Positions 1-6,042 of a DNA stretch of 6,042 nt are shown piece after piece (the stretch's first letter is position 1; each line of letters begins with the position of its first letter). The position numbers were made by a program, and so were the translations under genes. Location: positions 1 through 6,042 of the forward strand of contig CAXIUT010000120.1 in assembly GCA_964035545.1 (NCBI GenBank), given 5' to 3'. Source of the stretch: Bugula neritina. Taxonomy: Eukaryota > Animalia > Bryozoa. The notes beneath the pieces were generated by a model. That model saw only the letters and a list, made by a program, of their open reading frames with translations, was not told the DNA's origin and made no database searches.

Positions 1-87
1 CCCAACCCCAACCCCAACCCCAACCCCAACCCCAACCCCAACCCCAACCCCAACCCCAACCCCAACCCCAACCCCAACCCCAACCCC
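1..87 (+). repeat. Left telomere, (CCCCAA)n, C4A2 type
   Basis: Perfect CCCCAA tandem array from base 1 to 87, then an abrupt switch to AT-rich unique sequence (tgttttcg...). Same repeat unit as Tetrahymena telomeres. Confidence 0.99.
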
Positions 88-187
88 TGTTTTCGATAAC
101 TTATCATAACTAGCAATAAATAATAATAAACTATTATAAAATAGGTTCGTTAATTCAATTTGATTGTTTGAAATTATAAAAAAATCA

Positions 188-2422: not shown

Positions 2423-2884
2423 ATGTAAGGCGATAAATAAAAACCAGTTCTTTTCTACGATATTAACTAACCTTATGGAGAATTTAGCAACTTCTATCCT
2501 TCTCCATTCAAAGAGAAAGATACTCTCTATCAATGTAGTGAGTACTACTTTCAATCAAAAAAATTTGAAGGAACAGTAAAGGAGCAATATGTCCTTGAAG
2601 CACCCACTTCTAGAGATGCTTTTACTCGAGGGAACTAAAGAACAGGAGATCCTTTAAGAGCTGACTGGCCAGAAGTAAAAGAACAAGTTATGAAAAATGG
2701 ATTGAGATTGAAAATTGGACAAAATCCAAAAATTCTTTAAATATTGTTATCAACTGGTAATAGAGAGATCGTTTAGCATACTGAAAAAGATAAGTATTGG
2801 GGCGATGGAGGAGATGGATCTGGAAAAAATAGACTAGGAATACTTTTCATGGAGTTAAGATAGGAATTTAGAAAAGGAAAGTGA
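2423..2884 (+). CDS. ybiA: NADAR family protein (YbiA-like N-glycosidase / ADP-ribosyl hydrolase fold), 153 aa
   Basis: Translation contains PYGEFSNFYPSP, SEYYFQSKKF, PLRADWPEVKEQVM and LLSTGNREIV[TAG]HTEKDKYWGDGGDGSGKNRLGILFMELR. This is collinear with E. coli YbiA motifs (YGDFSNF, SEHYFQAQKF, WESVKEQVM, LVEHTENDAYWGDGGHGKGKNRLGYLLMELR). The ORF has 5 TAA and 2 TAG in frame and stops at TGA 2882-2884. Confidence 0.95.
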
Positions 2885-2984: not shown

Positions 2985-4091
2985 TCATAAAACAATGATT
3001 CCTTTTCGAACAAATAATTGATGAAGTAAACTTTTATGTCTATCATCAATAACATTACCACTAACAGACATTACATTTAGCTTAGGTTTTGATGCTATTC
3101 TTAAAATGACTTCTCCAGACATTTGATTATTTTCACTCCAAAACAGCTATAAACACATCATCAACTCAGCAATCAGTTTACCTGACTCATCTGTTGCTTA
3201 TGTTTATGATATCAATAAGTTTTTCAGACGAGGAAGACCTCTAGCTATTGTTTCGATACCTGAATCACCTACTCTATTTCCTCTGATATCTAGAGTATGG
3301 ATAAAACTAAGGTTGTTAACAATTATCTTACAAGAGAGACTGGTTAGGAAGTTATTTCTGATTTCAAACTCTTTTAGATTTTTAAACAAACTGATGGTAG
3401 GAATTTATTTTATGAGATCTTCGTCTTTTAAGTCTTTATTGCTAAAGTCAGCCATTTTACTATTTTTATCAACTTTGACATTTTTCCATTGATATAGTCC
3501 AGGAACTATGTCATTTTTTTAAGGACTGTAAATCTCAGAAATAGACTTTTTGCTTTCTAAAGGAATAAGTTGAGTAGAATTTACTAGTTGTTCTACAGCT
3601 AAATATCTAAAAGGCTTTTATGTAATGTTTTCAATATTAAGTTTATCTAAAAACTATTGAATATCTTCAAGAGAATTCTCTGTTTAGGAAGTGTCATAAT
3701 ATCTATTATTTCTTTAACTAACTATTCTCATCATTTTGGATATAGATTTTGATGGTAGTTGTTGATAGTTTTTTTATAATAGTTGAGAAATCATGGACAA
3801 ATTAACTTTACCTTTAAGATGTGGATAGTAAAATTGATTGATCCATTACTGAAATATTTGTTCCTCTTTTTCTAATTTTTATAGAAACCTTTTGCTTATT
3901 TCTTGATACTTCACCTTTGCATTATATTTGACAGTATTGATTGCTTATTCATTAAGTTTGGCTCCTTCAAGTTTAGCTGATAACTATTCGATGTCGAGTC
4001 TCAAATGATCAACAGATTAGAAACAGTCAAAAGAGCCACAGATACAGCATCGTTCTTAGTTCCAGGATCTGACTATTTTGGTTGACTTCAT
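2985..4091 (-). CDS. Leucine-rich repeat protein (RI-like LRRs in the C-terminal third; N-terminal Cys cluster and helical/coiled-coil region), 368 aa
   Basis: Minus-strand ATG at 4091 open to TGA at 2987-2985; it contains the track ORF 3204..3389 in frame. LRR units: LKEFEIRNNFLT, IHTLDIRGNRVGDSGI, LKNLLISETEATDESG, LELFWSENNQMS, LNVMSVSGNVIDD. N-terminus has RCCICGSFDCF. Confidence 0.88.
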
Positions 4092-4450: not shown

Positions 4451-5095
4451 ATGATACAAAGGTTTGTCCTCTTGTGCCTACTCGTAGTTCTTAGTCTCTC
4501 TGTAGGATAGTTCTTCTCTGATTTCAGACAGTCATTTGGGTCAAAGAAAGGTCTTACCTTCCAAGCCACAGTCTGGCCAGAATAAAAAAATAGCTTTGTC
4601 GGAAGAATGTCATGTAATGGATGTAACGCTCAAGAAGGAGATACTTCATGCACCACAATCCTCCCTGTAACCTGTATTATTCACCACCTTAAACTTGATC
4701 GACCATGGTACAGCTTCTATCCCAATTTTACTCCTCTGAATAACCCCGATAATTCCTTTTATGAAGGATGGACTGGAGGAATCATCGCTTTAACTGACCC
4801 AGTACGAGGTTTGGAAGTCGATAGCTATATTACAGGAACCAGAATGTGTCAAAATGCCTTTGGAGGAGATGCTAAAATGGCAACCTTTACCGATGGCTAC
4901 TACATGCCTTATATGAATGGTCCTAACATCGCAATTTAAAAGCTATGGGACTGGTCTAAAGCTCAAAGAGGAGAATTCAATTTTTGGGGATATTTTAATC
5001 ATCATCATATTGGTAAGAGCTGGGTTTGGACTCAAACTACTCCAAGTGGAAACTGCATTCTCCCAAAATCCAACCCTATAACAAGAAGACCTTGA
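4451..5095 (+). CDS. Secreted cysteine-rich protein, 214 aa, resembling a bacterial (myxobacterial/xanthomonad-type) domain often labelled 'flagellar hook-length control protein'
   Basis: ATG at 4451 to TGA at 5093-5095; extends the track ORF 4607..4939 on both sides. Signal-peptide-like MIQRFVLLCLLVVLSLSVG, then KGLTF, SCNGCNAQEGDTSCTTILPVTCI, YEGWTGG, PVRG, CQNAFG, MATFTDG, FNFWGY, WVW and GNC; six Cys in the mature part. The ORF is solid; the family call is from recalled motifs. Confidence 0.85.
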
Positions 5096-5141
5096 TTTTG
5101 ATTGAATTATTGATAACTTTAATTTTTCATAAATATATCTA

Positions 5142-5172: not shown

Positions 5173-5853
5173 ATGTAGGCCCTAACCATGAGTTGTAGAT
5201 CCATTGTTCAAGATCAATTTTTCGAGAAAAATCAAACATAAAAATTGAAGAAACATCAAGATACTGTCAATAAAATCTCTCACTAGAAATTATTTCATCT
5301 CAAATAATACAAAAAAGAAGTTTAGTCTCGAGCATCAGTCTTAAGAAAGTCTAAATCAGCTGCTAAATAATTTAGAAATAAAGAGCAAAATGTTCAATTC
5401 AAAGATCTAAACATCAAAATGCTGACTAAAATATGGCATCTTTCTCCTATCGTTGATTCTTTCAAAAATGATAAGTTTCAATATGTATCAGGAAGTAATT
5501 GGAATTATCATAAAAGGAAGCTCTAACAAATAAAGTAGTAAAATAAACTTATCAGCCAAAAATTCATCCAAAATAAGTCAGATAAAATCGAAAAAAAGAA
5601 AAAAATTAAGTAACATATCAAAGAGTATATTGAAAGGAGAGACAGCATTAGAAAATTTAGAGTTCATTCGAAAAAATTAAAACGTTGTGCTTCAGAAAAA
5701 AAGCAAGAAAATCTTCATAAAATAAATAATAAAATAGTTAATAAAGACTAGAAAGAAGATGAGAAAGAATAAGTAAATCCTGAAAAATCACAAGAATTTA
5801 CTAAAATAATGGAACATAAATAAAATGAAGTCAACCTGGAAACGAAAAATTGA
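5173..5853 (+). CDS. Lys/Glu-rich coiled-coil protein, probable CFAP97/Hemingway (KIAA1430)-like ciliary protein, 226 aa
   Basis: Open from ATG 5173 (alternative in-frame ATGs at 5146 and 5188) to TGA 5851-5853. NIKMLTKI and GSNWNYHKRKLEQIKEENKLISQKF resemble the family's N-x-x-(L/M)-L-x-K-(I/M) and S-L-N-x3-R-K-x-E-x2-R-I-x2-E-N-x2-(L/I)-x2-R-L motifs. The ORF is confident; the family call is moderate. Confidence 0.7.
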
Positions 5854-5925: not shown

Positions 5926-6042
5926 GGGGTTGGGGTTGGGGTTGGGGTTGGGGTTGGGGTTGGGGTTGGGGTTGGGGTTGGGGTTGGGGTTGGGGTTGGG
6001 GTTGGGGTTGGGGTTGGGGTTGGGGTTGGGGTTGGGGTTGGG
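5926..6042 (+). repeat. Right telomere, (TTGGGG)n
   Basis: Perfect GGGGTT array of 117 nt running to the window end. It is the reverse complement of the left array, the correct polarity for a linear chromosome end. Confidence 0.99.

Follow-up and report, generated by a model that had tools for sequence, protein, structure and literature searches.

The window, which is the whole stretch of 6042 bases that was analysed, has a GC content of about 29% and is capped at both ends by telomeric repeats that can be read directly, CCCCAA (C4A2) on the left and GGGGTT (G4T2) on the right. Since telomeres stand at both termini, the window is a complete linear molecule, namely a ciliate macronuclear chromosome with telomeres of the Tetrahymena type. 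When TGA alone is read as a stop, six long open reading frames tile this molecule at distances of 70-360 bases from each other. The window is therefore a complete telomere-to-telomere macronuclear mini-chromosome with six genes, and its features are as follows (contigs of related ciliates are cited by L numbers).

1-87, no strand: left telomere, CCCCAA repeats; related contigs are capped by the same repeat type.
188-1150, + strand: gene 1, 320 codons; TGA-only frame with 9 TAA and 5 TAG, ending in TAA-TGA; orthologues in L001, L017 and L011.
1219-2316, + strand: gene 2, multi-pass membrane protein, 365 codons; TGA-only frame with 13 TAA and 1 TAG, ending in TAA-TGA; orthologues in L001 and L017.
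2423-2884, + strand: gene 3, predicted NADAR/YbiA-like protein, 153 codons; Pfam NADAR, PDB 2b3w and alignment with E. coli YbiA; stop TGA at 2882-2884.
2985-4091, - strand: gene 4, leucine-rich-repeat protein, 368 codons; matches to LRR_4 and LRR_6; 13 TAA and 3 TAG; orthologues in L001, L017 and L011.
4451-5095, + strand: gene 5, secreted Cys-rich protein, 214 codons; TAG 4508, TAA 4583 and TAA 4937.
5188-5853, + strand: gene 6, probable CFAP97/Hemingway-like protein, 221 codons; 8 TAA and 4 TAG, including TAG 5536 and TAA 5539.
5926-6042, no strand: right telomere, GGGGTT repeats; in the relatives gene 6 is likewise followed by the telomere.

Together the six genes hold 1641 codons, among them 50 in-frame TAA and 16 in-frame TAG, while in-frame TGA is entirely missing and every gene ends in TGA. 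A preliminary description of this DNA had stated as much in general terms, and the counts bear it out. Judged by the TGA density of the other five frames, a TGA-free run of the observed length would be found by chance with p = 6e-6 to 6e-2 per gene.

Are these frames kept in other organisms? Contigs encoding homologues of gene 5 come from at least 8 distinct relatives with GC contents from 29 to 49%, which come from lake, reactor and sulfidic-cave samples. Orthologues were taken from contigs L001, L017, L011, L013, L010, L027, L006 and L008. Both L001 (the terminal part of a contig of 101,745 bp) and L017 (10.7 kb) preserve the order and orientation of the whole six-gene set, and in both a G4T2 telomere comes after it. 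Partial sets are found in L011 (gene 1 and genes 3-5), in L013, L010 and L027 (genes 5 and 6, with part of gene 4 also in L027), and in L006 and L008 (gene 5). Compared with the window, the orthologues are 29-32% identical in amino acids for genes 1 and 2, 58-65% for gene 3, 51-55% for gene 4, 62-89% for gene 5 and 44-52% for gene 6. A pseudogene or non-coding reading of the genes was also considered, and it is ruled out by the TGA-free frames, the synteny and an amino-acid conservation of 30-89%. No part of the window resembles human, viral or toxin-related sequence.

The end of the chromosome upstream of gene 1 differs between these organisms. In the window the telomere lies only 100 bases upstream of gene 1, while in L001 and L017 the same six-gene block is the terminal part of far longer contigs (101,745 bp for L001, over 10.7 kb for L017) that carry more genes upstream (L001:3891-5600 and L017:1-4400 compared with window 1-187). 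As the block is terminal on longer contigs in two relatives, the window species would have an extra chromosome breakage site, which would yield the 6-kb six-gene chromosome. At the other end, the last 90 bases of L017, L020, L022, L023 and L024, which represent one relative sampled in several metagenomes, show that the point of G4T2 addition varies over some 20 bases downstream of gene 6. Such scatter is what would be expected for de novo telomere addition in ciliates.

Gene 3 starts at ATG 2423, and its in-frame codons include TAA 2426, 2438, 2468, 2636 and 2738 and TAG 2774 and 2861. Its three longest stop-free pieces match positions 9-72, 78-107 and 123-159 of the 163 positions of the Pfam family NADAR (PF08719) in collinear order, with scores of 27.2, 17.4 and 19.9 bits, each of which alone is below the cut-off of 35.1 and which sum roughly to 64. 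E. coli YbiA (PDB 2b3w) is also matched by stop-free pieces of the gene, and the final piece of 28 residues aligns with YbiA from end to end with 40 bits. Because the NADAR pieces are collinear, gene 3 is read through its own TAA and TAG codons. With profile matches over the length of the family, it is predicted to be a small single-domain NADAR protein. It has the SE-x-YFQ and VEH...D..WG motifs in common with E. coli YbiA (PDB 2b3w) and the NADAR family (8bau); it differs from the E. coli protein in being a eukaryotic (ciliate) copy with two motif glutamates written as TAG. The gene was aligned by MAFFT with the genuine E. coli YbiA (L015:3469-3951:-) and with the orthologues from L001 and L011, and three of its reassigned codons are as follows.

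2774-2776, + strand: TAG at the Glu of V-E-H-T-E; Glu in E. coli YbiA, L001, L011 and PDB 8bau.
2861-2863, + strand: TAG at the final Glu of M-E-L-R-E; E. coli YbiA, L001 and L011 have Glu here, 8bau has Ala.
2636-2638, + strand: TAA in G-N-x-R-T; L001 has GAA (Glu), L011 has TAG, E. coli YbiA has Asp and 8bau has Gln.

The motifs SE-x-YFQ and VE...D..WG are complete in gene 3 provided that TAG 2774 is glutamate. The earlier placement of this codon on the conserved glutamate of V-E-H is upheld by every protein compared. The same placement of TAG 2861 on the final glutamate of MELRE is right with respect to E. coli YbiA; family-wide conservation of that residue does not follow, given the alanine in 8bau. 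TAA 2468 and TAA 2636 do stand opposite aspartates of YbiA (in SDDYG and GRDRS), as had been described, and TAA 2738 stands opposite alanine. Both aspartate columns are variable among the NADAR proteins compared, and as evidence on TAA they are weak. Glutamine itself is written by five codons in gene 3, all five of them CAA and among them those of YFQ, KEQ and GQN, in agreement with the preliminary description. In the orthologues, too, NADAR glutamates are written with the reassigned codons: the Glu of VKEQVM is TAA in L001, and that of SEHYFQ is TAG in L011.

The remaining genes were examined for identity and for their TAA and TAG sites. Pieces of genes 1, 2 and 5, both from the window and from the longer orthologues, gave no significant Pfam family. 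In gene 1, TAA 758, TAA 764 and TAG 776 stand opposite glutamate in both L001 and L011. The orthologues of gene 4 in L001, L017 and L011 are 51-55% identical, and TAA 4017, 3945, 3405 and 3204 together with TAG 3147 are glutamate in both L001 and L011. In gene 6, the two glutamates of ...IKEENK... in the orthologues correspond to TAG 5536 and TAA 5539, and L001, L010 and L013 have glutamate (or TAA) in these columns; the motif glutamate formerly proposed for TAA 5539 is thus recovered in the orthologues. The gene 6 orthologue piece of L001 scores 25.5 bits against Hmw_CFAP97 (PF13879), for which the cut-off is 25.6, and the window piece gives no match; gene 6 probably encodes a ciliary protein of the CFAP97/Hemingway type.

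Gene 5 is the best conserved of the six. The 110-aa open reading frame at 4607-4936 has no exact match on record. A word search with the 117-aa stop-free piece of the gene found 30 metagenome proteins whose identity over the aligned region is 61-97%; the two of highest identity cover only 20-26% of the query. Most of these homologues are fragments that start or end exactly at TAA positions of the window, and no family is attached to them. Several of them start or end exactly at TAA 4583 or TAA 4937 and therefore have TAR (TAA or TAG) there too. The column of TAA 4583 is glutamate in 10 of 10 homologues and that of TAA 4937 in all 16 that read through it, while the column of TAG 4508, right after the signal peptide, is a mixture of Q, E and D. 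The protein is about 215 aa long with an invariant E-G-W-T-G-G core, is 62-89% conserved across related contigs and occurs in dozens of metagenome samples; the GC content of its gene is locally raised to about 40%. An AlphaFold2 prediction from an alignment of 23 sequences of the family gave a mean pLDDT of 38.6 and no confident fold. In one database protein, P0025, a transglutaminase-like N-terminal part precedes the gene 5 family sequence, and this fusion is probably a chimeric assembly or an artefact of gene calling.

What, then, do TAA and TAG encode over the whole molecule? The window genes were aligned to their orthologues with X at each TAA or TAG, and the alignments were converted to a codon-versus-codon table. 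Likelihoods were calculated with substitution frequencies learned from 5254 ordinary aligned pairs in the same alignments. The results over all relatives, whose likelihoods treat related lineages as independent, are as follows.

Window TAA, 130 sense pairs: E 60, Q 12, G 12, L 9, D 6, S 5, K about 3, Y 0; Q is below Glu by 88.9 log-likelihood units, D by 127 and K by 187.
Window TAG, 46 sense pairs: E 21, Q 7, D 4, S 4, K 3; Q is below Glu by 36.4 log-likelihood units, D by 49.5 and K by 65.

The values from a single relative are the conservative ones: with L001 alone glutamine falls behind glutamate by 13.5 for TAA and 8.4 for TAG, and with L011 alone the values for TAA are -11.1 for glutamine and -26.4 for lysine. 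In columns where at least two relatives are in full agreement, glutamate is found at 14 of 20 TAA and at 5 of 6 TAG, while lysine is found at none of the TAA columns and glutamine at one. As a control, unanimous columns at genuine window codons return glutamate in 18 of 23 cases, lysine in 51 of 61 and glutamine in 14 of 20. The reverse comparison agrees, as the TAA and TAG of the relatives are most often opposite glutamate (or TAR) of the window. Two exceptions, TAG 4508, which is opposite Gln (CAA) in three relatives, and TAA 3198, which is opposite Gly in two, are both in variable stretches. The six syntenic and conserved genes contain 66 TAA and TAG codons that are read through and lie mostly on glutamate columns, and therefore the assignment UAA = UAG = Glu in the window genes is supported by these alignments.

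The amino-acid composition was compared as well. In aligned columns GAR plus TAR makes up 8.8% of the window codons versus 8.6% in L001, and 8.4% against 8.1% in the comparison with L017; over whole genes the values are 9.0% and 8.6%. The glutamate (and glutamine) content matches that of the relatives only if TAR is glutamate, and an assignment to glutamine or lysine breaks the agreement. TAR and GAR exchange at the same sites between related ciliates. The share of TAR among glutamate codons is about 45% in the window, where GC3 is 26%, versus 18-31% in L001, L017, L011 and L013, where GC3 is 55-78%. The usage of TAR for glutamate follows base composition, rising as GC falls.

There is a further question, whether TGA is the only stop. 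TGA ends all six window genes and their L001 orthologues, and the stop positions coincide between orthologues for genes 1, 3, 4 and 5. TAA directly precedes TGA in gene 1 (1145-1150) and gene 2 (2311-2316). The last codon of gene 1, TAA 1145, is opposite a C-terminal Glu codon, which TGA then follows, in the L001 orthologue, and that TAA is therefore a sense codon. Thus UGA is supported as the only terminator in the window, on a sample of six genes, with rare context-dependent stops possible elsewhere. Downstream of gene 5 (5093-5113) TGA recurs in frame at +2 and +6 past the stop; such back-up UGA stops are reportedly enriched in ciliates that use UGA only. In gene 2 (2158-2316) and its L001 orthologue a TAA stands in the same column about 50-75 codons before TGA, and beyond it both proteins have poorly conserved Lys/Ser-rich tails up to TGA. 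The C-terminus of gene 2 is the least certain gene boundary of the window.

The reading that we prefer, and hold with high confidence, is that this complete ciliate macronuclear mini-chromosome uses the 'peritrich' nuclear code (NCBI table 30), with UAR as glutamate and UGA as the sole stop. The orthologue alignments thus favour, for TAA and TAG alike, the same assignment as the preliminary description had proposed. By analogy with other recoded ciliates, Glu-type tRNAs bearing the anticodons UUA and CUA would decode UAA and UAG, and eRF1 would no longer recognise UAR, being restricted to UGA. A tRNA scan found none in the window and one tRNA-Ala but no suppressor in about 62-70 kb of related loci, which is too little sequence to expect one.

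How do other codes compare with this reading? The standard ciliate code (table 6), in which UAA and UAG are glutamine, is the commonest code in ciliates, and glutamine is indeed the second-best fit to the data, with CAA opposite TAG 4508 in three relatives. However, glutamine is behind glutamate for both codons by the margins given above, already with a single relative. The conserved glutamine columns of NADAR use CAA while TAG occupies an invariant glutamate, and the glutamine and glutamate contents match the relatives only with TAR as glutamate. TAR at conserved glutamine columns had been named beforehand as the contrary pattern to look for, and in the orthologue alignments glutamine holds only 1 of the 20 unanimous TAA columns. 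We regard table 6 as very improbable here. Still further from the data is a split code as in Oligohymenophorea sp. PL0344, where UAA is lysine and UAG is glutamate. Its published precedent is also oligohymenophorean with about 30% GC, and TAA is often placed within Lys-rich stretches in the window, such as the gene 2 tail and ...FNK-TAA-KSKS... in gene 1. But lysine accounts for only about 3 of the 130 residues opposite TAA, 187 log-likelihood units behind glutamate. It takes no unanimous TAA column, against 51 lysine columns at genuine AAA/AAG codons, and counting TAA as lysine would raise lysine to 13% in the window. The preliminary description favoured glutamate for TAA and left lysine open; the matter is now settled for glutamate, and the split code can be given hardly any credence.

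The stops allow another alternative, an ambiguous code in which UAR is glutamate inside genes and a context-dependent stop in some of them, as known for Condylostoma, karyorelicts and Blastocrithidia. TAA as the last codon before TGA in genes 1 and 2 would suit such a code, and so would the TAA shared by gene 2 and its L001 orthologue with poorly conserved tails after it. Against this, TGA ends all six genes and the L001 orthologues, the terminal TAA of gene 1 is opposite a Glu codon, in-frame TAR is distributed along entire genes, and none of the UAR = Glu ciliates in the literature is reported to have an ambiguous code; the alternative seems highly unlikely. A last alternative concerns the organism rather than the codons. 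The window and its metagenomic relatives might form a non-peritrich lineage that either arrived at UAR = Glu independently or stands midway between the peritrich code and the split code of PL0344; in the window species the genome would also have been broken into multi-gene chromosomes of a few kb. We consider this unlikely; a non-peritrich placement of the lineage would mean one more independent origin of UAR = Glu.

For the preferred reading, table 30, the most likely and parsimonious source would be a peritrich or a close relative. The Tetrahymena-type G4T2 telomere fits the class Oligohymenophorea, which includes the peritrichs. An Rfam scan of the window and about 62 kb of related loci found no rRNA. 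UAR as glutamate is the code of Peritrichia, and PL0344, with UAA as lysine and UAG as glutamate, is the sole published oligohymenophorean exception (PMC10553269, PMC11687900). With the peritrichs (Vorticella, Opisthonecta, Carchesium and Campanella) the window has in common UAA and UAG as glutamate and UGA as the only stop, and it differs in the very heavy use of the reassigned codons, about 45% of its Glu codons. With PL0344 it shares UAG as glutamate, UGA as the only stop, a GC content of about 30% and a freshwater oligohymenophorean type of genome, but UAA is lysine there and glutamate in the window. The users of table 6 (Tetrahymena, Paramecium and Oxytricha) likewise read both UAR codons as sense and stop only at UGA, and Tetrahymena has the same C4A2/G4T2 telomere; the amino acid is glutamine in table 6 and glutamate here. 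The code of the trypanosomatid Blastocrithidia (table 31) has UAR as glutamate as in the window, whereas UGA is tryptophan and UAA is also a stop in that organism, while UGA in the window ends six genes and is never in frame.

The code of the window is not new, as it is already described for peritrichs, and no new kind of code is added. The value of the result is mainly practical, for the correct annotation of such a genome. With the usual ciliate table, glutamine would wrongly stand at about 4% of codons, close to half of the glutamates, and standard or bacterial gene callers fragment every gene. What is more, the syntenic relatives are a compact test bed, in which TAR and GAR exchange freely at conserved glutamate sites with TAR rising as GC falls. 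Such free exchange is the expected look of a fully established reassignment.

The relative L007 (run SRR1560848) comes from a metagenome of sulfidic cave-stream biofilm at Frasassi/Acquasanta (PMC4288042), and L008 was taken as the same organism. On the L007/L008 contig there are also genes for SDHA, a CCT subunit and a mitochondrial carrier, each of them broken up by TAA and TAG in frame. In the succinate dehydrogenase flavoprotein gene of L008, TAA is found at the positions of E98 and E296 of E. coli SdhA.
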